Shown piece after piece: positions 2,223 to 45,541 of a stretch of DNA of 64,000 bases; within the stretch, counting starts at the first letter, position 1; each line of letters starts with the position of its first letter. The notes below the pieces were generated by a model. It made no database searches. It saw nothing but the letters and a program-made list of their open reading frames with translations, and had not been told where the DNA came from. Source of the DNA: Oopsacas minuta (lineage: Eukaryota > Animalia > Porifera); NCBI GenBank assembly GCA_024704765.1, contig JAKMXF010000301.1, forward strand, positions 451,143-515,142, read 5' to 3'. The position numbers and the translations under genes were made by a program.

Positions 2223-4070
2223 CATAGCCTACATAATATACTGCTATATATGTTACAATTTATAGACCCATAATAGAAGCCAGATTTGCGAAATGTAAAT
2301 TGACAAATGGGGGTGTTCAACCTTACATTGTTATTTTCTGTTATGCGTTTTCAACTTCTTTCTTACTTATGATATGTTTCCTTCTGAAATTTACTTCAGC
2401 TGATTGAAAATGGTGAACCATTGGGCTGCAGTTAAATGCAAAACTGGTTACACCAGTGATAGTAGTTAGAAAAGCATTGCACATTTCTTTTCCACCAAAC
2501 CCAGATGTATATAAACGAAGGATCCTTTGAATAATCTTGCTATTTGGAATCTAACCAAACACTCAGTAATATGCGAACTTCGCTTTAAAGAAAGATTTCT
2601 TAGTCTTGGTGAAAATGCAACCTAAAATGGCATTTGAATCATGTACCATCAATATATCTGTCGAGTTAATGCAGAGTCTATTGTCCATTCCAATACCAAC
2701 AACTAGCAATCCTCGAAGAAAAAGAGCCTATTGGGAAGATGAATTAGAGACATTCAATGAAATATCATTGGTACTATATATGCTCTGAAAGATTTAGGGA
2801 TAAATTACACCAATCTGGAGAATTATTAGGTTTTCTGGAGGCAACCATAGCTATGGAATAACATAGTATGTTCACAACTTTGGGACTAGAAATTCAGTAC
2901 AGTAAATAATATTATTAACATAAATATTAACAATTATTATATGAATGTGGCTGGGAAGCAATAAGAGCAACATAATGCATGTTAACACCGACTTGTCACA
3001 GTGAGCATTTTAGTAAACCAAAATGAAGTAATGAAGCTTTTGACAATATTGTTAATAGACGAAACGCTAATGCACTAACACCACAGTAGTTAATGAGGTC
3101 GGAGTAACGGTAATGCTGTGAGCTCTGAATCAGTGTATTCATCAAACTTAATTGCAGACCACTGCAATATGAATTTCAATAATTTAGTAATCGACGAAAC
3201 GCTCAATTTTCTAAGATTTCGAGTCGATTAAATCAACAGAAAATTACACGTTCAACTCCAATACAATTGTATTCTACTTACACTACCACAATGGTTTGTT
3301 CAAGGACATAACGTACAACTCCAAAAAATTAGCATGTTAGTAAATTTTCCTTCATATATAAGCAATACAGCAGCTGAAAACTAGTATTCCATTTCCGAGG
3401 AACTGAAGAGAGGCAGTATTATCGAGCCAAGGTAGACCTGCGTATTTTGTAGCTATTATTCACTATACTCTTCAGTTAAGACATACCGCCTTACAAGCAG
3501 ACAAGTTGTCACTGGAAATTACTCGGATTTCCAAATAATATAGCACACCCCAAAAATAAAGGTTAGAAGAAATACCCATTCAATGATATTGTGCATGGGG
3601 TTAAGAACATTCGAAACAATTTATTGAATTGAACAAAATTGCTTCCAGAATTTATCTACAATGAAATTTGCACATTAAAATTCATTACCCAGCAGGCTAC
3701 ATTCGTTTGGGGGAATATATAATTGAAAAATAAAGAACTGAAAGGAAATCTGAGAAGAACCACGAAACTATAATATCGAGAACTACATCCTGGTGAGAAC
3801 AAGTAAAATCCACCTCTAGCATTAGCTATAATAGATGAAACCTCCATTGCAACTACTAAAAGTTATTTTCTTGGCAGACCGGATGTGATCAAAATCATAA
3901 TGCAGTTACCTTTATTTATGAAATCTTTCCCAATCGAAACAACGAGATTATCGAAAGAAAATTGACAAAGCGATAAAAAATGCGAGGAGTGCAAAGCTTC
4001 ATTAGCTGCACGTGATAATGATGTCAACAATGATTCTTATCTAGCACTCCTATCTCGTTGCGGTCTATTC
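2223..4070 (+). pseudogene. Degraded, internally deleted THAP/P-element (THAP9-like) transposase remnant
   Basis: Manual translation across frames gives MVNH[W]AAVKCKTGY...LTKHSVICEL[R]F...LKWHLNHVPSIY (THAP, from 2410), LPQWFVQGHNVQL...ENxYSISEEL (about 3280-3400), DIVHGVKNIRNNLL (about 3585), and LHPGENK.NPPLALAIIDET (about 3780-3840). CATAGCCTACATAA at 2223 resembles the terminus of the P-like element at 16626. Confidence 0.75.
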
Positions 4071-5130: not shown

Positions 5131-8100
5131 ACGAATATAGGAGCGGGAAAGAGTATACAATTTATGACAATATATTTGTGTGTTCGAATACTTTTGTCCC
5201 CTGACTGTATATGGATTAAGGAATCATAGGAGAGCTAGTAGCTCCTCTAGATGGATGGTCATTGACGATAATATATTGGGGAGCGGAAAAATCGAGGATA
5301 TTTCACTATTACCACAAAACAAATGGGCCCACGTCACACATCATCCATGCTATCAGGCATTTCCCCAAATAAGTTTGAACCCTTCTTTAACAATCATTAG
5401 AGGGTTATGCTACAATTCGTACAAGTGAACTTGTAACAAGTTCTAACATAAAGATTTTATTCGAACATGGGTCAAATCAGTCTGAAAATGAACTTGACAT
5501 GCTCTAAGATGTTAAATCCACCCAATGATAAATCTTAGTGTTAGAGGAGCAAAAAATTCCAAAAATGTCCGATTCTGAAACTTTTCTGAAAAGAAAATTT
5601 CAGAAATCCAAAATAGATTTTAAAACTATAGGATGGAAAGTGTTGTAACTTGCGATACAATATAATAGTAAGGGACTTATAGTGTGGAATGTTTCAAACA
5701 ATCTGAAGATGTTTGCTGAAATCATTAAATGGGTTGACAATAATTCCCCAGAGTAGAAAATCATAATATATTACAATTGACCTAATATCTGGCACCTCGA
5801 GGGAATAAAATGTGGGGTCTTTAAATAATAACACACAGTAAATTACGAGAAAGAAATTTCCAGCAATTCCAAAGCATAGATATCGCGAGATGACAGCAAA
5901 AACTAAAATAGATGTGCTATTATGAGATAGTTATGTATTGTTCTTACGATTCACATATCATTAGGCAAATATATCTACTGTTAACAAACTTGATAAATCG
6001 TGAGTCTAACTTGATACTTTTTAAGACACTTTCTTAAACCATTAAAATTATATTTTCATAAATTTCGCTCCTCCTCGACCTTGATTCGATAAGAATATTA
6101 TTATCTCGTTATAGGGATAGTTTAAAGGAAATTTAGCTTTCAAGGGTGGTAAACTTTCAGAATGATCATAACACAATTTAATGGTACAAAGATAGAATCA
6201 ATTTCGACGTAGCTTGGCGCTATGACATATTCCTTACGAAACTGAAAAATATGCGTACATATTTTTCGATTTTAGAAATTAATCTGACGAAATGGCAGAA
6301 GGACAGGGCACAATTATGGCGCATGTAGAAATAATCATCCCGTTGTTGAATATGCAAAAGAATTTATCCCAATCAAAACGCATAATGAAGACGTTGTTAG
6401 CCACAGTTTTGTTGTAAACCTTGAAGGGGAGATGAAAGATATTGGAATATATCGCAATTTTTGATTGGGCGTCATAACTGACAAAAAACCTGGCAGTCAT
6501 AGTCACCACAATCTCAATTTTTCGTATTCTCTTTAAATTATCAGTAATCGAACGACCAGCAAGATGGTCTAAATACGTGGAAAGACCCAATTGACTCTTT
6601 TGAGTCAGCTGAGGAAATGACATCGGGTAAATTATGTCGTTAAAGTGGCCAGATAACCGAAAATGCATGTCCTTTCGCTCAGCAAATTGTAAACCACACT
6701 GTAAATCAATCACTGAAAATTGAATTGAAACCACAAATTGAGATAATGGATGACAATGACTGAGAATTTGTGCCACTTTAGGGGCTAAAATCATAAATTG
6801 AATATATTCCAAGATTCTTGATCTTCCGTATGATCAAAATCAAAACTGTAACCCACGGTGTTGTCTTGAAAAGAAAATGGGTCGATATGAATCAATACCT
6901 TTGAACATTCAAGAAACGGGAACATTATCTCTACAAGCACAAGAAATTATGAACTGCCCTTCTGCATTCTCCCTCGTAAAATTCACCAAAATGAACATGT
7001 TTACATAAATTATTCATTTTCATCAAGGTATAAGCTTTCCCAAAAGATATAACACTCCCTTCTACAAGATTCGGGGGAGAATCCTACTATGATTTATAAA
7101 AAGTTTAGGATAAAGCAGAAAACGTCATGCAATCACTCATGCAACTGTAGTATATCAATACAAATATCTAAGAAAACTTATCCTGACAAATATGACAGAA
7201 ATGCCTACATATACCTTTTACAAGAGATAACAATTTTAGGAGTGTGCTCGGATAGTGATGAATCAGCGATAACTTTGGGGGGATTTGTTTGAAGTGTGTT
7301 CTCTGAAGAAGCAATAAATACCTCAGTGGTTGAGTTAGGTATCCGAATTTCTCTTAAAGCGTATAGATCGGAGTCGCACCATATCATATTTAACTGTCGA
7401 ATTGATTGAATCTATTAGAAAAAATAATAAGAATCTACAGAATTTACATTAAGTTTAGGAATGAGGTTTCTATAATGAATCGGGATACACAATATTGCTA
7501 TTTCCAATAATCAAGATATCCAATAATTATGCTAAGAGGGTTTTCGGAGGCAAAAACTATACCTTATAGCTATTTTTCTAATCAAGACTTGAAAAGTATT
7601 TCAAAATCTGAAACCTGAATAGGAATTAGTTTATGCACAATATTCACATTATTGCAATCAATTTATCGGGCTGGTTTGAAACAAAATGTATACAGGCAGC
7701 CCTTGCAGGGGGGGGTTACGTTACTCAAAATCGTCTCGATTGGCAAAATCGCCAACAGTAAGAAGTTAGTTCAGTTAAATAGTGGGGTTAAGTTCCTAGA
7801 TTGCAAAATTACTAACAATAAGTGAGACTAAACATGATCGGAATGTATAATTACGCAATAATAATGAGTAATCAATAGGTGTGTGAACAGAAGAGGGTGA
7901 ACTAGTTGATTTCATTAAGAGAAGGTTATTTTCACGTGTTGAAAATATCACAAAAACACCAGAATAGTTGAACTAGATAAAATGTCCAATGTGAGTCGGC
8001 TGTTTTTCGAGAAAATAAATTGAATTACTATCAGAGTGAATACATCGCGAACGGAAAACTAGCGAACTGCGAGGAGTGCTGTACAATATCAAAATGGCCT

Positions 8101-8322
8101 TAGCCAGGTTCTCAGGGCAATTAGGCAAAAATACAGTGTACAAAATGGCAAATCGGGTAGGATTTATACACCATCTAGGGCAGTGGTTCCCAAACTTATA
8201 TACCTAGCGACCCACTTTTAATTCACCAAAAACCTCGCGACACCCCAAAGTTAACTAGGATTATCTAATAATTCATGATCAATTCAGTAGTATTATGATA
8301 TGATATCATTAATAAATGTTTT

Positions 8323-8404
8323 CTAATGTGAAGGATGTAGTTGTTTCTGCTTAACTAACTCTTGTATTTCGGACTCTGTGGTAGAGAGTGCTCAACGTAG
8401 GTCG
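8323..8404 (-). pseudogene. Separated C-terminal tail of the Buster transposase
   Basis: The minus strand reads DLR*ALSTTESEIQELVKQKQLHPSH*, the typical Buster C-terminus continuing from ...VEDD on the far side of the nested element. Confidence 0.88.
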
Positions 8405-11400
8405 CACAGTGGTTTAATAGGGTAGTTAATAAAGAATAGCTATTTTGGTGTGAGATAGCCATATGAAATGTATCATCTATAATAGATTATTATATATAAG
8501 GAACCAATACATCTTGTGATAACAAGTATATGGTCTAAAATTTCCAAGTCATGACGTCATTGATATATGTAAAATTTTAAATTTTCTTCAATAAATACAT
8601 TTTACTCGACTTTATCACCAAGAAATCTATTAATTACATATGGGTTATCCGTATTTGGCAATCACCTTGAACTTAAAATTTTGTTGTAGGGCTTGTATTT
8701 ATAGAGTCATAACGTCTTCAGAAATATGACGCCACACTTATGATGGAATTTATCTTATTGATTTACAAAATATACATCATATTCCTACTTAAGCTCATGA
8801 TAAGTAATCTGTATTGGAGGTTAAAGTCGTGAATAAAGTCTGTATACTAGTTTTCTGATTGTTCATAGCATTGCAGCATTTAGATCTCGTTGTGTGTCCA
8901 GATCGACCACATCGTTCACAAGTCAAAATTCTTCGATAGTCTACTAAGTTTGGATCACTTTGAGAGGTTAATCTGACGAAGATATCCATAATATTGGTCT
9001 CAAAACTAACTTTACGAGCTAAATTCTCCCGATATTTTCTAACTAATTTGTTGCATGATTCTGTGCCTTCTTCTGAAAATGCCTTTAAGCCATAGCTAGA
9101 ATTCGACTCATGTATTAACTCCTCGGAATGGGCCAAGAGCTTGTGCAGGGTTGGAGTCATGCTACTCCAGGGAAAGAATCTAAGATGACAAGGTAGGTAT
9201 CCTTGCACAATTTCTCCAATTCCAAAGTGTTAACCTTGTGACTTGAATTGAAAACTCGAAGAATGGCTGAAACCTGAGTATGTATCTTTGATAAGATTGG
9301 GCGATATTGTATTGCTACAGTTGATAGAATGCATTCAAGGTATTCAATTTCATCAGAAAAGGCTCTTCTAGCAACATTCCCTATTGAGGTGGTTCCACCG
9401 CTAGAATTGGCTGGTCAACCTTTAATCCTGCCTTCTCCTGAATAAATGTTTGAAGTAATTTCATTGACTCCTTGATAACTGGTGAAGTTGGGGACCAAGG
9501 AAACTTTTCGATGCGAAGATGATATACCAGCAAATTGAACCACCTAAAATTTGTTTAATTATGTGACGATTAATTCTGAATGGTTAATTGAGTACTAGAT
9601 TACTTACCTAAATACGCCTGTGTATGAATGAAGTGGAGATGCTGGATGTATGTTAACCTCTAAAATTGGTTGATGAGTTAAATTGAAGCGTTCATTAGTC
9701 GAAAGAGCAAAGAACGACTCAATGTCATCAATGTACGAAAATAACTCGATTGCATCTGTGATATTTCTGTTGATGGGGAACCCTTCAAGAACTAAATCCC
9801 GGTGCTTCAAATCTTTATATATGGCAGTGTACATCTGACAACTGACTCCTCCAGCTCCAGAGAGAATGGCTGCCATCTTCCCATCAAACATTGAGGGGAT
9901 AATATCGACATTGACAACACCATTTTCTAAAGGAATCCTATTTTGCAACATCGCTGTATCGGGATTAATCATAGTTTCCATGAAGGAACGAATATTTTCT
10001 TCGCATTCTGTCGCAGCGCAGAGAAAAATAGGTCTTTGAGAGAAGGGTGAATTAGGGGATTTATTCTGCCAAACAATCCTGTGTTGTTACAGTGTGGATG
10101 AAGATGGGCTCGAAACAAAACAGAATGAAGTTTTTGGTGAAAGTATTAGTTATCTGCTGGTTATAGATAGTGTGACAACCAGAACCATCTAAGCCATCTG
10201 CGATTTTAAATGTGAGTTGGAATTCTTCATTTGTGGGGCGATCTACCATTGACAATATTCTTCCAGGGTTTTCTGAACTTGAAGAAAATATGGTGCGTGT
10301 GTACCTATTGGTTTAGCTGGATTAGGATATAAAGTTATACTGGATCGCGAAATCATGATATCTCTCAGATTAGCTAGCTTGCTGTAAGATGGGAAATGTA
10401 TAATGTCTGGTAGAAGTGTTTGACGTAGTTGAGTGTATTTTCGGCTGCCCACTTAAGTAAATCCAGCAGAAATAGGGCTTTATCAACTGGAATATGCTTG
10501 TTACTGAGGTAACAGAGTCCTCCACTGACAATAATCTCTTTGGCTACCGTAGCAACCTGACGATTATTCTCCTCATTTGCCAATAGTTGTAATGAGAGTG
10601 CTGCAATGCATATTTCTGTAGTATTCTCAATAACTGAGAGTGACTTAATGCATCCTAGCAGACTTGACAATCGAGTACGCTGTTGCTGCAGAGAGAGATC
10701 ATCAAGATGCTTCCTATGACTCACTGAATGAATGGGAACTCCACCATCATCAGAAGACGACTCTAGTAAATCAGAAACACGATTTTTCTTTAACTCAGGT
10801 TTCATGGAATATTAGAATGCCACCATTCTCCTTCTAAACAATCTAAAGATCTCTTCGCCTTCTTGAATCTGTGCCGAATTCTTAACAGCAACGTTTCCAA
10901 GAGTTTCATGTTATCAGAGTTTATTTCAAAGTGTTCTTTGAAATATTTTGTCGTTTTCAAGACACCTATTATTGTCTTTCAGGATACTGGTCAATTCAAG
11001 GCGGGACTTGGGAAAGTTAACTCTTCTGTCATCGTTTTCAAGAAATTCAGAAAAATATTTTGTATTATTCAGTAGATTATATATATAAGTACTATAATAA
11101 ATTTCAAGAACCAAATTCAATACTATTTCATTCCATTGTTGCAGTATGCTACAATGGGAATTTCATAGCAACGAAAAGTTGTAATGGAATTTCATTGAAA
11201 ATTATAGGTTGCGCACTGTTTTGGGTTTGTGGTTTTAGATCATGTTTTTAGGAATCGTAATGCTTGTATACGATTAATTTTGCGCTGTTGTTTTGTGTTG
11301 TTATTTTCCTGACATTTTAAGTATTACTCCTTGCAAAAATTCTGTACGGATTTTACTAGATCTTAGAAATCTTATGTTCACGAAATATATACAAGATACA

Positions 11401-11710
11401 GTCATGGAAACAAGATATTTGGAATTGGCATAGTCGAAATGTATAAACAATAAAGTATACCAGATTAGTAACATTCGATTATGTAATTGCTCTTACAGGT
11501 TCATATGAAATTGGGGCTAAATTTAGAAATCATGAAGCCGCAATTTTCCTATAAATATTTCGCATCTTTGCTGAAGAAATTTTACAGCTTCTAGGGTCTC
11601 AATCGCTTAGATATTTTAAATGAGAATCATTTAAACAATATAAAATGAAATAAAACCATCAAAATGCGGAATCAATTTTTCGTCTATTAATTGCTTCTAA
11701 AACCACTGTG
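8405..11710 (-). mobile_element. RAG1-like / Transib-superfamily DNA transposon
   Basis: Both ends begin CACAGTGGTTT (8405 plus; 11710 minus). Flanks GGTCG/GATCA are a degenerate 5-bp TSD. The element encodes a RAG1-core-like transposase. Confidence 0.9.
8795..11120 (-). pseudogene. RAG1-core-like (Transib/RAG1L) transposase with at least 5 frameshifts and one GT-AG intron (9544-9607); 5' end uncertain
   Basis: Motifs in RAG1 order: RKHLDDLSLQQQRTRL (NBD-like), FKIADGLDGSG (D1), WQNKSPNSPFSQRPIFL, SMFDGKMAAILSGAGGVSCQM[Y] (D2, Zn CxxC), SPLHSYTGVFR|WFNLL, GNVARRAF, TPTLHKLLAHSEELI (Zn HxxxxH), SEEGTESCNKLVRKYRENLARK (E), SDP, CERCGRSGHTTRSKCC. Confidence 0.9.
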
Positions 11711-13344
11711 GATCATCTTCCACTTTTAATCTATTCCTAGTGCTACTTTTTAGCTGTAGAAGAGTGAGAAAATTTGATTCATAGAGGTAAGTTGTGACAA
11801 ATGGCAGAAGTTTTCGCAACACAATTCTTGTCAATGTGGGATATGAATCTTTCATTAAGCTCCAAAAAGTACTCAATTCCTCTCTTTCAAAGACTTCCTT
11901 TGCAGATCCATCATTGATAAGTTCTATTAATTCATCCTGAGCCCGATCATCCTTATCAGGTATTGTTTGAGGAGATACAATGAATGGATTTCTGAGTAAA
12001 GTAAATTCGATGTCACCACATTCAGGAAAATAATGGGAAAATCAGATTCCATAGCTGCAAGGTGTCTAATGATAATACCTTTGATGTCCTCGTCTAGCCT
12101 GATATCTTTCTTCTCGAAAAGTTCAGATAACCCTTCGAACATACAAATGTTTCTATTTTCAATTTCTCTTTTCCAATTCTTAAGTTTCATTTGGAAAGCA
12201 TTTAGTTCTCCATTCAAATCAAAAATATCGACAAGGTAAGCAAGATGCACTTCGCTCCTCTCATCTGAGATTATTGCCAAAAATTTATGTTTTGCGTTTT
12301 GGTCAAGGAATACCTTTATCTCCGAAAGCAATATTTGGAATCGTTTAAGAATATTTCCCAATGAAAGCCAACGTACTTGAGTGTAAAAGAGTAGTGTTTT
12401 GGTGACTAGCGGTCATGTCCTCGCATAGTTCTCTGAATAGCCGTGTGTTAAGTGCACTGGATTTGATAAAGTTAACTATCTTTATTATTGTAGACATCAT
12501 TTCTAAGAGCTGTGGCGGCATAGTTTTACAAGCTAGCGCTTGTCTATGGATCACGCAGTGTACTCCTGTGACTTGTGGTGATATATTTTTAACAAGCTTT
12601 CGAAAGCCTGAACGCGAACCAAGCATAGCTGGTGCTCCATCACTACAAACGCCACACAAATCCTTTCCCTCGAGTTTATTATCTTGGAAAAAACTGTCAA
12701 TCAATTCAAAGACATCCTGTGTTCTGGTTGTGGTTTCAAGTTCACGACAGGACAAAAACTCGTACTTAAATTTATTATTGTGAATATAACGGCAGTATAC
12801 CATTAATTGTGAGCATGATGAAACATCTGTAGACTCATCAAGTTGCAGTGTAAACAACTTAATAGGAGAAACGAGTAATTGTTTCACAATCTGTTTCAGG
12901 ATATTATCCGACATATCAAAAAGAGGGATGCATGATAACTTTTGGCGAATTCATTTGTAAAAATAAGTTGAACCATGTCCTTTGCACAAGGAAGTATGAG
13001 GTCCTCTCCAATTGTGTGAGGTTTGTACTTTCTTGCTATTCTTAAAGATACAAGGTATGAAGCTTCAATACAGGTGAACGACTGTTGTTGATAAGTGCCT
13101 GTTGTATCAAGTCTTGATCGCTTACAATTTCCATCCTTTTGAAAAATGAAGGGTCTTTAGATGAATGTTCACGATGACGAGTTTCGAGATGTCTTTGTAA
13201 TTTACTCAGTTTCATTGAGTCGGCTGAGAGAGTCTCATTACATACGACACATTGGGGGTTTAGAATTCCCGAATTTTGAATACAGGCAAATCCATAGTTA
13301 ATATAATCTTCTGCGTACTTCCGCTTTTGTGGAGCCGTTGTCAT
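11711..13344 (-). pseudogene. Buster-type (ZBED8/FAM200-like) hAT transposase, frameshifted
   Basis: BED finger (PQCVVC...LQRHLETRH), LQLDESTDVS, CSDGAPAMLG, HCVIHRQALA, and hATC dimerisation region (FWSLMKDSYP...LLPFVTTYL...RNRLKVEDD) spread over several frames. Confidence 0.92.
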
Positions 13345-39478: not shown

Positions 39479-41100
39479 CACTGGTCAACAAACAATTTGT
39501 TGCCTAAGATGTTAGATCCGTTTCTAGGCATATTTACCTCGAGGAATCTGAAAATGGCATCGGCTTATCCGAATTGGCTCTAGTTTTGCGATACCTAATG
39601 TTAAATTTGGCGTGATAAGTATAAAAATAATGAAGATATATTACACATAAATTTCTTCACATTAAATAGTGGCATGGTGTTTCAGTGGTGACATCCAACT
39701 TTTATGCTTCCAAGTGTAAATTTGAATTATTGAAATTTGTAGTTTTTGAATGTAATTATCAACAGCAAAACCGAAAATTTGGGAAGTATAATTTTATCAT
39801 TATAGCTACTCCGTATGAAATACATTTATCATTGTCAAAACAATTAATCAGTTAAAAGTAATAATATTAAAAAGAATACTAAACTTGTTTATTGAAGGAC
39901 ATCTAAAAATCGTCTCTTATTTGATTTTCTGTTATGGGATATCAGAGGGCAATCTCGCTGGAGGCTCCAACAGTAATCTGCCATCATGTGGGTTTCCCAC
40001 CTGCCTTGATATCTCTCTTCAATGACTTTGATGTCCTGATGAAACCTTTCCCCTGTTCCTCACTTAAATCCCCAAGGTTTTCAGGGAAACGATCCAGGTG
40101 GGTAAATAGATAGTGAACCTTGATGTTAACATCTAAATCTTTAAATTTGTAAAGCATGTCATTGACCAAATCTATGTAGTTGTTAGCTTTATTATTACCC
40201 AAGAAGTTATTGACTACCAAAACAAATGCACACCATGCAGAAGATTCTAAAATTAGTCATGGATTGGACGAACCCAGTGTTTCTGATGAGGCTGCGGATC
40301 TGAGGACCATCAAAGATCCCTGCTTTCAGTATTTCATTGCTCATTCCTGGGAATGATCTGCAAATGTACTTGAAACAGGGGCCGTCTTTGTCTAGAAATT
40401 TTACGAAATGCTTCATTAAACCCAGCTCGATGTGGAGGGGTGGAAGAATGATTTTTCTCTAGGAACCAATGGTTCATATAGAATGTTTGCTCCTCCAACT
40501 GTTAGATCAGTTCTCAAGGGCCACATTTTATTCACCCAATGATCTTTGCGGGCTCTGCTGTCCCATAAACATACAAAACAAGGGTACTTAGTGTATCCAC
40601 CTTGTTGGCCAAGTAGAAAGTTTACCATCTTGAGATCAACACATATCAACCACTGGTGTTCATGATATTTCAATTTTTTGCAATACCATTTAAATATTTT
40701 CCTACTCCACCTTAAGCTTTGTTGAATGTCCAGTTGGAATAGATACATATTTATTTCCATTATGCAATAAAACGCACTTCAAGCCTCCCTTGGAACTATC
40801 AATGAATAGACGCCAATCTTCTGGTCTATATTGTTGACTCATCAAATTGATGGAAAATTGATGCTGGGTACGAATCTGGCGGTAAAGTTGATTGGATAAG
40901 ATTTGGAAAAGGTTATCACTTGGGAGATCTATAGCGAATTCGCCGCAACCGCTATTATAAAATCATTTTTGAATGTCAATACGTCATATCTCAGCTTGGG
41001 TACGATGATTTCTGGATTTGCAAGCAATCCTTTCTTCTAATTCTACTAGTAAATTGCCAAAAGGTTAATTTCATTGTAATAGATTTAAATAGAAACTATT
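39479..41100 (-). mobile_element. Degraded, 5'-truncated Chapaev3 (CMC) element
   Basis: TTA|CACTGGTCAACAAA terminus. Minus strand reads DWRLFIDSSKGGLKCVLLHNGN, CVDLKMVNFLLGQQGGYTKYPCFVCLWDSRA, LPPLHIELG, GIFDGPQIR, and DLSEEQG.RFHQD. Confidence 0.85.
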
Positions 41101-43245: not shown

Positions 43246-45541
43246 CACAGCCCTGCGGAAAAACAAATTTTATTTGCTGATTGTTATTGCAAAACATTTT
43301 CTAATCCACATTTTAATACTGATTTTGAATAATTTTGTAAAATATACGTATCACGTCTAGTTTTTTTGCAAAATTATTTTTAAATATTGGTATATTTATC
43401 GATGAATGCATGATACCTCTCCAAGTAAAATAGTGAAAATCTGCCATTTATAAATTTTTATTGATAATATAATCTTAGTTAATAAATAATTTGAATATAT
43501 TAGTCTGAATCAGGAGTAAATTTCCGTTTTTTTGACATTCTAGCATGAATAACATCAATACAATCTCTCTTGAGGCAGCAGCAGTAATCAGCCATCATAT
43601 GAACGTCCCACCTCCCCTGATATCGTGTTTCCATTGTTTTTATATCTTGGTGGAATCGTTCACCTTGCTCCTCGGAAAACAGCTCCAAGATTCTCTGGAA
43701 AATAGTCAATATGACTGTGAAGAAAGTGAACTTTTACACTCATATTGCAGCCGAGATTCTTGTAAGATTCAATCAACTCATTCACAAGTATTTTATAATT
43801 AGGAGATTTCGTATTTCCCAAGAAGTTTTTCATGACATCTACAAATGCATTCCATGCACATTTTTCTTTGCATATCATAGAATTTGAAAAATTATCATCT
43901 CGAACAAGTTGTCTTATCTGAGGACCGTCGAATATACCGGCTTTTCTTTTTTCATCACTTAGGTAGTAAAATTTCTCGGTAATATATTTGAAACAATTTC
44001 CTTCTTTATCTAATGCCCTTACAAACTGTTTCATCAATCCTAATTTTATATGAAGTGGTGGAAGCAAAATCTTGAGAGGATCCACTAGAGGCTCGTGAAT
44101 AATGTTCTTATCTCCAACATTAAGATTGGTTCTAGCTGGCCAGCTCTGTCTAGAATAGTGTTCGCTCTTTGCACGACTGTCCCATAAGCATAAAAAACAA
44201 GGGTATTTTGTATATCCTGATTGCTGTCCTAAAAGAATGCATATGATTTTTAAGTCACCACAGATTACCCAATTGTGCTGGTTATAATTAATTTTATGAA
44301 GCACAATTTTCATGTTATCATATCGTTCCTTTAAACTTACTGAATGTCCAATTGGTATGGAACTAAATTTGTTGCCATTATGAAGTAGAACACATTTCAA
44401 ACTTTGTTTTGAACTATCAATAAAGAGTCTCCAATCATTAGGTACATACGGACATCCAAGAGCATTAACTAGCGGTGAAACATCATGACAAAACACAAAT
44501 CCGTCTTCCATTATGAAATATTTCAAAAATTCGATCTCTCTGTTCCTATATGAGTAAAATTTTGTTTCTGGGAGAAGCAAGTTTTTTTCTTTTAGCCTAG
44601 AACCTAACAACTCCGCAGATTCTTTAGGTAAATCTAAATCACGTACCAAATCATTTAATTCAGACTGATTAAATAACTGTGGAGAATTAGAACGAGATAA
44701 TACACACGGAATAAAATCCTCATCTTCTCTAATTAATGAATCTCTAGTTTCACAATCATCAATTTCCGAGATAACACCCAAATTAGTAAATTTTGGAACA
44801 GGTACATCAATAGAATGGGGAACGGGTCGTATTGCTGAATGTAAATTTGGATACTTGATCAATGACTTGGTTTTAGCATTGAATCCGGAAATATTCGCCA
44901 TACAAAAGTAACAATCGCTAATGTGATTTTGTGGCTCTCTCCATATCATTGGAATTCCAAAACTTAAACTCTTTCTGATTCCTTTTGTCCATTGTCTCAA
45001 ATTTTCTACACAAGATCGGCACACTGTATGTGGAGCCCATGTTTTGTCTTGATCACCTAATCTCATTCCAAAATATCTTAAATATGCTTTTTTAACAAAT
45101 CCTGTTATTGCCGTAGTTTGTTTAGAAGTCATAAAACTCCCACAAATATAACAAAAGACGTCTGGATCATTACTGCACCTTCTCCGATAAGCCATATGAT
45201 AATAAAATATCAAAATAGTAGACTATAGTACAATAAAGCTGTATATAACAAAAATAAAAATAAAAAAATTATGTAGAAAAGAATGGAGTTAAAGGGACTA
45301 ATTAGAAAATGCAATAAAGCACGCATCTGTTTATTTCAAAAGACAAAAATTCACACATGTATCAAATATAATCATTTATTCTAGGGAAGTGTACTTAAAA
45401 AAATCGACTTACATTAAAATGACATTTGAGTAAAAACGAGACGTGATAGGGGAAATCTGATGACAGATTGAGAATCAGTATACTCAAGTTAACTAAAAAC
45501 AACCCATGGATAATAATCAGCAAATTTGACGCAGGGCAGTG
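43246..45541 (-). mobile_element. Chapaev3 (CMC superfamily) transposon, near intact
   Basis: TIRs CACAGCCCTGCG / CACTGCCCTGCG. 3-bp TSD TTA, confirmed by the empty site in the opposite foldback arm. Confidence 0.93.
43500..45213 (-). CDS. Chapaev3 transposase (517-aa ORF plus C-terminus after a single +1 frameshift near 43680)
   Basis: FCYICG...WAPHTVCRSC...WREPQNHISDCYFC (Chapaev Zn domain), WRLFIDSSK, ICGDLK, LPPLHIKLG, HFLHSH, then SEEQGERFHQD in the next frame. Confidence 0.9.

Follow-up and report, generated by a model that had tools for sequence, protein, structure and literature searches.

A decayed Transib transposon with RAG1-core-like architecture in the glass sponge Oopsacas minuta

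Introduction

Among the relatives of the V(D)J recombinase, Transibs are those that do without RAG2. They fall into two subgroups (Tao et al., 2022, Natl Sci Rev, PMC9435367). In Subgroup II, which includes HzTransib, the alpha11-alpha12 region has been lost and the protein ends in a CTT2 tail, whereas in Subgroup I the alpha11-alpha12 region has been kept, the tail is of the CTT1 type, the terminal inverted repeats (TIRs) are asymmetric, and the elements are nearer to RAG1L. The hosts of Subgroup I are ctenophores, Hydra and bacteria (PMC9435367). The CTT1 "CCGHC" motif was defined in PMC7204232 and PMC9435367, and the CTT* motif has been given as Cx2Cx3GHx4C (Martin et al., 2020). Asymmetric TIRs, the CCGHC tail and a nonamer-binding domain (NBD) with GRPR/K have all been seen already in Transibs (Martin et al., 2023, PMC10629977). 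Here, we describe an element at positions 8405-11710 of a 64-kb stretch of contig JAKMXF010000301.1 from the glass sponge Oopsacas minuta (assembly GCA_024704765.1); this whole stretch is called the window in the following. With a probability of about 90%, the element is a dead copy of a multi-copy, single-gene Transib that has a RAG1-core-like architecture and lacks a RAG2-like partner. Its structure, its further copies, the 5-bp duplications, the end layout common to the family, the domain content and the decay were observed directly.

Element boundaries, target site and sister copies

The element is 3,306 bp long and carries CACAGTGGTTT at both tips as an exact inverted repeat, at 8405-8415 on the plus strand and at 11700-11710 on the minus strand. 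These are the sole two exact matches in the window, and the CACAGTG-type tips that had been noticed from the letters alone (the sequence-only reading) are real. The same reading had regarded the flanking pentamers, GGTCG and GATCA, as a degenerate 5-bp duplication; they are identical at 3 of 5 positions. Logan contigs of four public runs were aligned to window positions 7700-12400. In contigs from two organisms, position 8399 was joined directly to position 11711, and the skipped 3,311 bases correspond to 5 + 3,306. A joint that lacks exactly these bases represents the empty site; therefore, the target was GATCA, and its left copy has mutated since. The weak flanks are a genuine target-site duplication (TSD) of 5 bp. 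The summed contig depth was several-fold greater within the element than across most of the flank, and the depth of the flank itself exceeds that of a single copy.

The assembly contains three more copies of the same family (L002, L003 and L004), which are 91.3-94.5% identical to the window element by BLAST and 92.7-95.8% identical in a MAFFT alignment. L002 (3108-6369; 92.0% by BLAST) is flanked on both sides by TAACA (3103-3107 and 6370-6374), L004 (3326-6616; 94.5% by BLAST) is flanked by AAGAC, and L003 is truncated at its 5' end. In each of these copies, the BLAST homology stops no more than 2 bases short of the 3' tip; in L002 and L004, which are full-length, it also reaches the 5' tip. 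Perfect 5-bp TSDs also surround copies of two sister families, namely L005 (AACTA) and L007 (CTTCG), and the heptamer tips of the window element recur at 7 related loci. Throughout four sponge families, all TIR-to-TIR copies are 3.2-3.5 kb long and contain one gene each. The TSDs of the sponge copies (GATCA, TAACA, AAGAC, AACTA and CTTCG) are AT-rich; according to the literature, Transib, ProtoRAG and RAG have GC-rich TSDs (Martin et al., 2023, PMC10629977).

The two ends differ in their inner organization. In gene orientation, the 5' end of the family consists of CACAGTG, 10 nt, the 9-mer AAAGAATAG and an A-rich run, and the 3' end consists of CACAGTG, 19 nt and the same 9-mer. An added T makes the 5' spacer of the window copy 11 nt long, versus 10 nt in the sister copies, and decay has turned the 5' 9-mer of this copy into AATTAATAG, whereas the sister copies keep the family motif. 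The layout of the 3' TIR is common to L002, L003 and L004, and it recurs in L005, L007 and L001 with family-specific 9-mers (AGGAAATAG at the 5' end and AGGGAATAG at the 3' end in L005; GGGAATAG and GGGAAGTAG, respectively, in L007). Altogether, the spacing of 10 nt (5') and 19 nt (3') was found in three sponge families, and within each of them the 9-mer co-varies between the ends. For comparison, the chance that two random 34-nt pieces of the window have one 9-mer in common is about 0.005.

Relationship of the transposase to RAG1, RAG1L and HzTransib

The minus strand of the element holds seven stop-free pieces in shifting frames, which carry the motifs in the order known from RAG1. This order had been proposed from the letters and was borne out; the "CxxC" motif of the same proposal, however, reads CQMY in the window copy. 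The pieces were searched separately and complemented by natural intact relatives, and an X-joined read-through was used for the tree only. In a PDB sequence search, the sole meaningful matches were HzTransib (6PQN), amphioxus BbRAG1L (6B40) and RAG1, to which the C-terminal piece (8798-9229) aligned with E values of 1.8e-8, 1.4e-5 and 3.9e-4, respectively. The same piece matched the Pfam family RAG1 (PF12940; E 5.6e-6), and it was the only one of the separate frame pieces to reach this family; the 160-aa central piece alone yielded no PDB match. A HMMER scan with the C-terminal piece retrieved 1,001 relatives. The nearest full-length proteins are from O. minuta and from large ENA assemblies, and the O. 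minuta relatives bear the NCBI names "Dna-mediated transposase" and "V(D)J recombination-activating protein 1...".

A profile built from 19 diverse full-length relatives scored 236 bits against HzTransib, 167 bits against BbRAG1L and about 105 bits against RAG1. Two regions of this profile, positions 1-155 and 396-446, have no counterpart in HzTransib. Positions 57-155 align to the RAG1 NBD; the N-terminal (NBD*) region of BbRAG1L pairs with positions 89-205, and positions 396-446 align to the ZnC2 segment of RAG1 and BbRAG1L, which runs from the CxxC to the LH motif and is matched by only about 11 residues of HzTransib. The distance from CxxC to LH is 66 aa in the sponge element, versus roughly 25-30 aa in HzTransib; in RAG1, it is about 65 aa (mouse sequence). 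In the 19-sequence alignment, the D of DGSG, the D and K of DGK, both Cys of CxxC, both His of H.(L)LAH, the E of E.(C)NK and the Cys and His of the tail are invariant or nearly so. The tail motif, Cx2Cx3GH with a further Cys after 3-6 residues (x4 in most), is present in 74 of the best 150 of the 1,001 relatives; in the sponge relatives, x4-x6 and then CC follow.

Intact relatives with a single open reading frame (ORF) of 723-725 aa are available (P0178, P0181, P0176 and P0180). They encode a transposase of about 720 aa with an NBD-like region, DDBD, pre-RNase H, RNase H (D-D-E), complete ZnC2/ZnH2, a C-terminal domain (CTD) and a CCGHC-type tail. The fold that AlphaFold predicts for P0178 (pLDDT 83.5, pTM 0.70) matched those of HzTransib (TM 0.81, by target), BbRAG1L (TM 0.76) and RAG1; with RAG1 chains, about 650 columns were aligned when the NBD was included and about 575 without it. 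The ZnC2 positions 396-446 were modelled as short helices (pLDDT 71-94). None of these intact relatives had a zf-RAG1, RING or other zinc-finger match in Pfam, and their N-terminal ~100 aa are without a Cys/His pattern.

The combination of RAG1-like modules raises the question of whether the element, instead of being a primary Transib, might be what remains of a RAGL transposon (RAG1L + RAG2L) after loss of the RAG2-like gene. The NBD-like region, the ZnC2 segment (which contacts RAG2 in RAG1), the CCGHC tail and the asymmetric ends would all be compatible with such a history, and an origin of Transib from RAGL via loss of RAG2L has been raised by Martin et al. (2020), as cited in PMC9435367. 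However, all TIR-to-TIR copies in the four sponge families have the short, single-gene format described above, a RING/ZDD N-terminal region is missing, the profile scores are higher for HzTransib than for BbRAG1L, and the GGTT(S)TGN.AR block is HzTransib-like. Apart from the transposase, no ORF of more than 70 aa was found within 8405-11710, and the remaining 393 and 678 nt of the element contain no ORF for a RAG2-like kelch/PHD gene. We consider the loss of RAG2L from a RAGL ancestor improbable, and a RAGL-type identity does not fit one gene without partner and a profile that scores closer to HzTransib than to RAG1L.

Decay of the window copy

The window copy has eight frameshifts, all of them indels of 1-2 bases, near 11010, 10966, 10808, 10455, 10263 and 10083 in exon 1 and near 9409 and 9173 in exon 2. 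In comparison with L002, L003 and L004, they are private to this copy save one, the 2-base deletion near 10966, which overlaps a larger deletion in L002. The change of a zinc-site Cys to Tyr (CQMY) is private as well: 9830 is T>C in every aligned contig, and all other copies have the Cys. With eight frameshifts and the loss of a zinc-binding Cys, the window copy cannot make a transposase; in addition, one of its inner end motifs is damaged. The view of the sequence-only reading, according to which this is a decayed copy of a RAG1-related transposon that has heptamer ends and 5-bp duplications, is supported.

Should the frameshifts be errors of the assembly, the copy would be intact and possibly active. 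The small size of all eight indels, the location of some of them in short homopolymers and the extra base at 10083, which is absent from every aligned contig, speak for this possibility. On the other hand, several indels lie outside homopolymers, and, relative to private substitutions, private indels are about as frequent (8/82) as in sister copies from another assembly (10/68 and 10/108), so that ordinary decay explains the frameshifts better than assembly error does. The private Cys-to-Tyr change in the zinc site and the mutated 5' 9-mer are present in addition. The 1-base frameshift indels coincide with indels in aligned contigs. Altogether, it is very improbable that the copy is intact.

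Classification

As in the Transib superfamily, the sponge element has a RAG1-core-like DDE transposase as its sole gene, CACAGTG/CACAATG-like heptamer TIRs and a 5-bp TSD. Three features that are diagnostic of Subgroup I, namely the ZnC2 "alpha11-alpha12" region, the CTT1 tail (as a spacing variant) and asymmetric TIRs, are also present. Conversely, the features of RAGL elements of the ProtoRAG type, a RAG2-like gene within the TIRs and N-terminal zinc fingers or RING, are absent, and so are those of Subgroup II or HzTransib-type elements, that is, a short protein (~500 aa) without NBD, a truncated ZnC2 and the CTT2 tail. The sponge element fits the published Subgroup I diagnosis (Tao et al., 2022).

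The closest described elements are the Subgroup I Transibs MleTransib_3931, PbaTransib_8175, HvuTransib-9_HMp and the bacterial CthTransib_0091 (PMC9435367), which share with the sponge element a single RAG1-like gene without RAG2L, the ZnC2 "alpha11-alpha12" region, the CTT1 (CCGHC) tail, asymmetric heptamer TIRs and the 5-bp TSD. Differences are the hexactinellid host, the GH-x5-CC tail and, in one family, an intron of 64 nt; this comparison was made by features. HzTransib (Helicoverpa zea; PDB 6PQN, 6PQX and related entries) has in common with the sponge element the D-D-E triad, the C2H2 zinc site, the GGTT.(D/T)GN.AR block, CACAGTG-type ends and the 5-bp TSD, but it is only ~500 aa long, lacks the NBD-like N-terminal region and ~40 ZnC2 residues, and has a CTT2 tail (PMC9435367). 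ProtoRAG/BbRAG1L (amphioxus, PDB 6B40) and other RAGL-B elements resemble the sponge element in the NBD*-like region, the full ZnC2, the CCGHC tail, the heptamer TIRs and the 5-bp TSD, and the profile alignment with BbRAG1L is continuous from ZnC2 to the CTD. However, RAGL elements have a convergent RAG2L gene and a RING/zinc-finger N-terminus, neither of which is present in the sponge element, and the similarity is below that to HzTransib. Vertebrate RAG1 and its recombination signal sequences share the CACAGTG heptamer, the motif order, the core fold including the NBD, and unequal spacers at the two ends. Yet the spacers are 10/19 in the sponge and 12/23 in vertebrates, the inner motif is AAAGAATAG versus ACAAAAACC, the residue aligned to R848 is Thr, the GRPR motif is missing, and the sponge element is mobile and multi-copy whereas vertebrate RAG1 is a host gene.

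The "intermediate" combination between Transib and RAG1L, which had been proposed from the letters, thus stands as far as the NBD-like N-terminus, the full ZnC2, the CCGHC tail and the asymmetric ends are concerned. The combination does not define a new class or a RAGL, since it is that of an already published class, Subgroup I, and the element belongs with the Transibs. That it is an ordinary Transib of the insect type (Subgroup II, HzTransib-like), without RAG1L-like features, is scarcely credible, although HzTransib is the top PDB match in both sequence and fold, because about 150 N-terminal and about 40 ZnC2 residues that can be aligned to RAG1/RAG1L lack an equivalent in HzTransib, a CTT1 motif is present in the tail and the ends are asymmetric. 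A domesticated host gene was also considered; it is ruled out by the multi-copy state, the TIRs, the TSDs and the decay.

A phylogenetic tree was calculated, which is unrooted and has relatives from krill and a copepod as its only named anchors. In this tree, the window copy adjoins P0155 with 100% support, and both belong to a fully supported clade of 26 proteins that are solely from O. minuta and sponge-like assemblies. The sister group of the sponge clade, which has a weak support of 87%, includes a krill protein. Whole-database searches with P0155 and with the 19-sequence profile returned only proteins from O. minuta and sponge-like assemblies.

Several observations weigh against the reading of the element as a dead Subgroup I-type Transib. 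The assignment is based on three diagnostic features, not on phylogeny, and the tree is without named Transib, RAG1L or RAG1 sequences. The NBD-like region reads HRK in place of GRPR, and the tail is GH-x5-CC rather than GH-x4-C. Some of the frameshift sites are intact in every aligned contig; Logan contigs drop rare variants and thus neither confirm nor refute the bases of the window. None of the four same-family copies compared is intact. Lastly, the intron was called from DNA and gene models.

In a search of the accessible literature, no paper was found to mention Transibs in Oopsacas or to describe them in sponges, and the text and supplements of Tao et al. (2022) include no sponge. The novelty lies in the host record, not in the kind of element, and a dead copy adds little alone. 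The host is indeed a non-bilaterian, a case that the sequence-only reading had called especially notable, and a sponge lineage with RAG1L-like DNA-binding modules and unequal ends adds a further non-bilaterian phylum to the host range of Subgroup I-type Transibs.

Transib transposases with CCGHC-type tails also occur in the krill Meganyctiphanes norvegica and the copepod Oithona nana (P0060, P0088 and P0131). Such transposases are abundant in marine assemblies of ENA and Logan, and in the unrooted tree no non-sponge group lies nearer than the krill type.

Proposed mechanism and implications

The chemistry of cleavage and transposition can be proposed by analogy to HzTransib and RAG. An active enzyme of this type would bind two unequal ends, one with the heptamer, 10 nt and the 9-mer and the other with the heptamer, 19 nt and the 9-mer, and the NBD-like region may read the 9-mer. 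A nick would then be made at the border of the heptamer, hairpins would be formed on the flanking DNA, and the excised element would be inserted via a 5-bp staggered cut.

A more far-reaching proposal, which we put forward as tentative and rather unlikely, is that the sponge Transib radiation, with its combination of an NBD-like domain, the full RAG2-contact ZnC2 segment, a CCGHC tail and 10/19 ends with a co-varying 9-mer, comes nearest among living lineages to the ancestor of RAGL that had no RAG2. If this were true, nonamer-type reading and a "12/23-like" two-length rule would predate the capture of RAG2, in one of the earliest-branching animal lineages. The natural intact relatives (~720 aa, e.g., of the P0178 type) make it possible to test whether an NBD-like region enforces a two-length rule for the ends without RAG2.

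Gene structure and genomic context

The features of the locus are compiled in Table 1; the catalytic residues were mapped on the triad D125/D224/E435 of HzTransib (bioRxiv 10.64898/2026.08.26.747230).

Table 1. Positions of the element, its gene and its surroundings in the window
Feature	Position	Strand	Basis
Left TSD copy GGTCG, mutated from GATCA	8400-8404	.	empty-site contigs and sequence
3' TIR (gene orientation): heptamer CACAGTG 8405-8411, 19-nt spacer 8412-8430, 9-mer AAAGAATAG 8431-8439	8405-8439	-	
Transposase exon 2, stop codon included; GN.AR and CTD	8795-9543	-	
C-terminal tail CERCGRSGHTTRSKCC (Cx2Cx3GHx5CC), variant of CTT1 "CCGHC" of RAG1L/Subgroup I Transib	8873-8920	-	
Exon 2: catalytic E in EGTESCNK	9059-9061	-	mapped on HzTransib triad
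Exon 2: ZnH2 HKLLAH	9128-9145	-	
Spliceosomal intron, 64 nt, GTAAGT...TTTTAG, phase 2	9544-9607	-	frame joining, sister copies, gene models
Transposase exon 1, ATG 11030-11032	9608-11032	-	motif and homology searches, alignment
Exon 1: ZnC2 segment absent from HzTransib	about 9637-9828	-	
Exon 1: ZnC2 motif CQMY, second Cys lost	9829-9840	-	
Exon 1: catalytic D in MFDGK	9883-9885	-	mapped on HzTransib triad
Exon 1: catalytic D in DGLDGSG	10187-10189	-	mapped on HzTransib triad
Exon 1: NBD-like region	about 10530-10718	-	
5' TIR: heptamer 11704-11710, spacer 11693-11703, degenerate 9-mer AATTAATAG 11684-11692, A-rich run 11675-11683	11675-11710	-	
Right TSD copy GATCA, original target	11711-11715	.	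sequence and empty-site contigs
Interrupted host DNA: C-terminal dimerisation region of decayed hAT transposase	11712-11876	-	PF05699

The two exons join in frame (...LHSYTGVF(R) to WFNLLVYHL) when the intron is removed, a splice that the sequence-only reading had suggested. The intron is conserved in the sister copies (L002 5165-5225, L004 5430-5493 and L003 2545-2608), and the NCBI gene models P0189 and P0218 splice exactly at this intron. It is missing in the sister families L001, L005, L006 and L007, which have uninterrupted ORFs, and L005 and L007 read AG/GT at the site. From these sequences, the intron looks like a recent gain at a proto-splice site within the transposase gene. A repeated "introner" was considered as its source and rejected, as no further copies of the 64-mer were found.

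The element is nested in an older, decayed hAT element. The ORF at 11712-11876 matches PF05699 (Dimer_Tnp_hAT) with 21.8 bits (cutoff 21.4), and the ORF at 12348-12914 on the minus strand, which is upstream in the hAT, has a weak match to DUF4371. The insertion into a hAT accounts for the repeated flanks and for the empty-site contigs. The reading frame of the hAT runs on across the Transib insertion site (...VEDD / LR*ALS...), and its remains extend over 11712-12914 (minus strand) and to the left of 8404.

Copies that are 85-95% similar to the element are also present in the runs X5 and X6 (one other organism label) and X7 (another). X5 carries the hAT empty site as well, so that both repeat families also occur in related sponges or in samples under a different label. 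Elsewhere in the window, at 40038-40455 and 43684-44109 (minus strand), there are stretches with 53-64% identity to the first 160 aa of P0285 (LOD99_5464), a gene model of O. minuta. The remainder of P0285 is Transib-like, so that this gene model looks chimeric, with another repeat joined to a Transib fragment.

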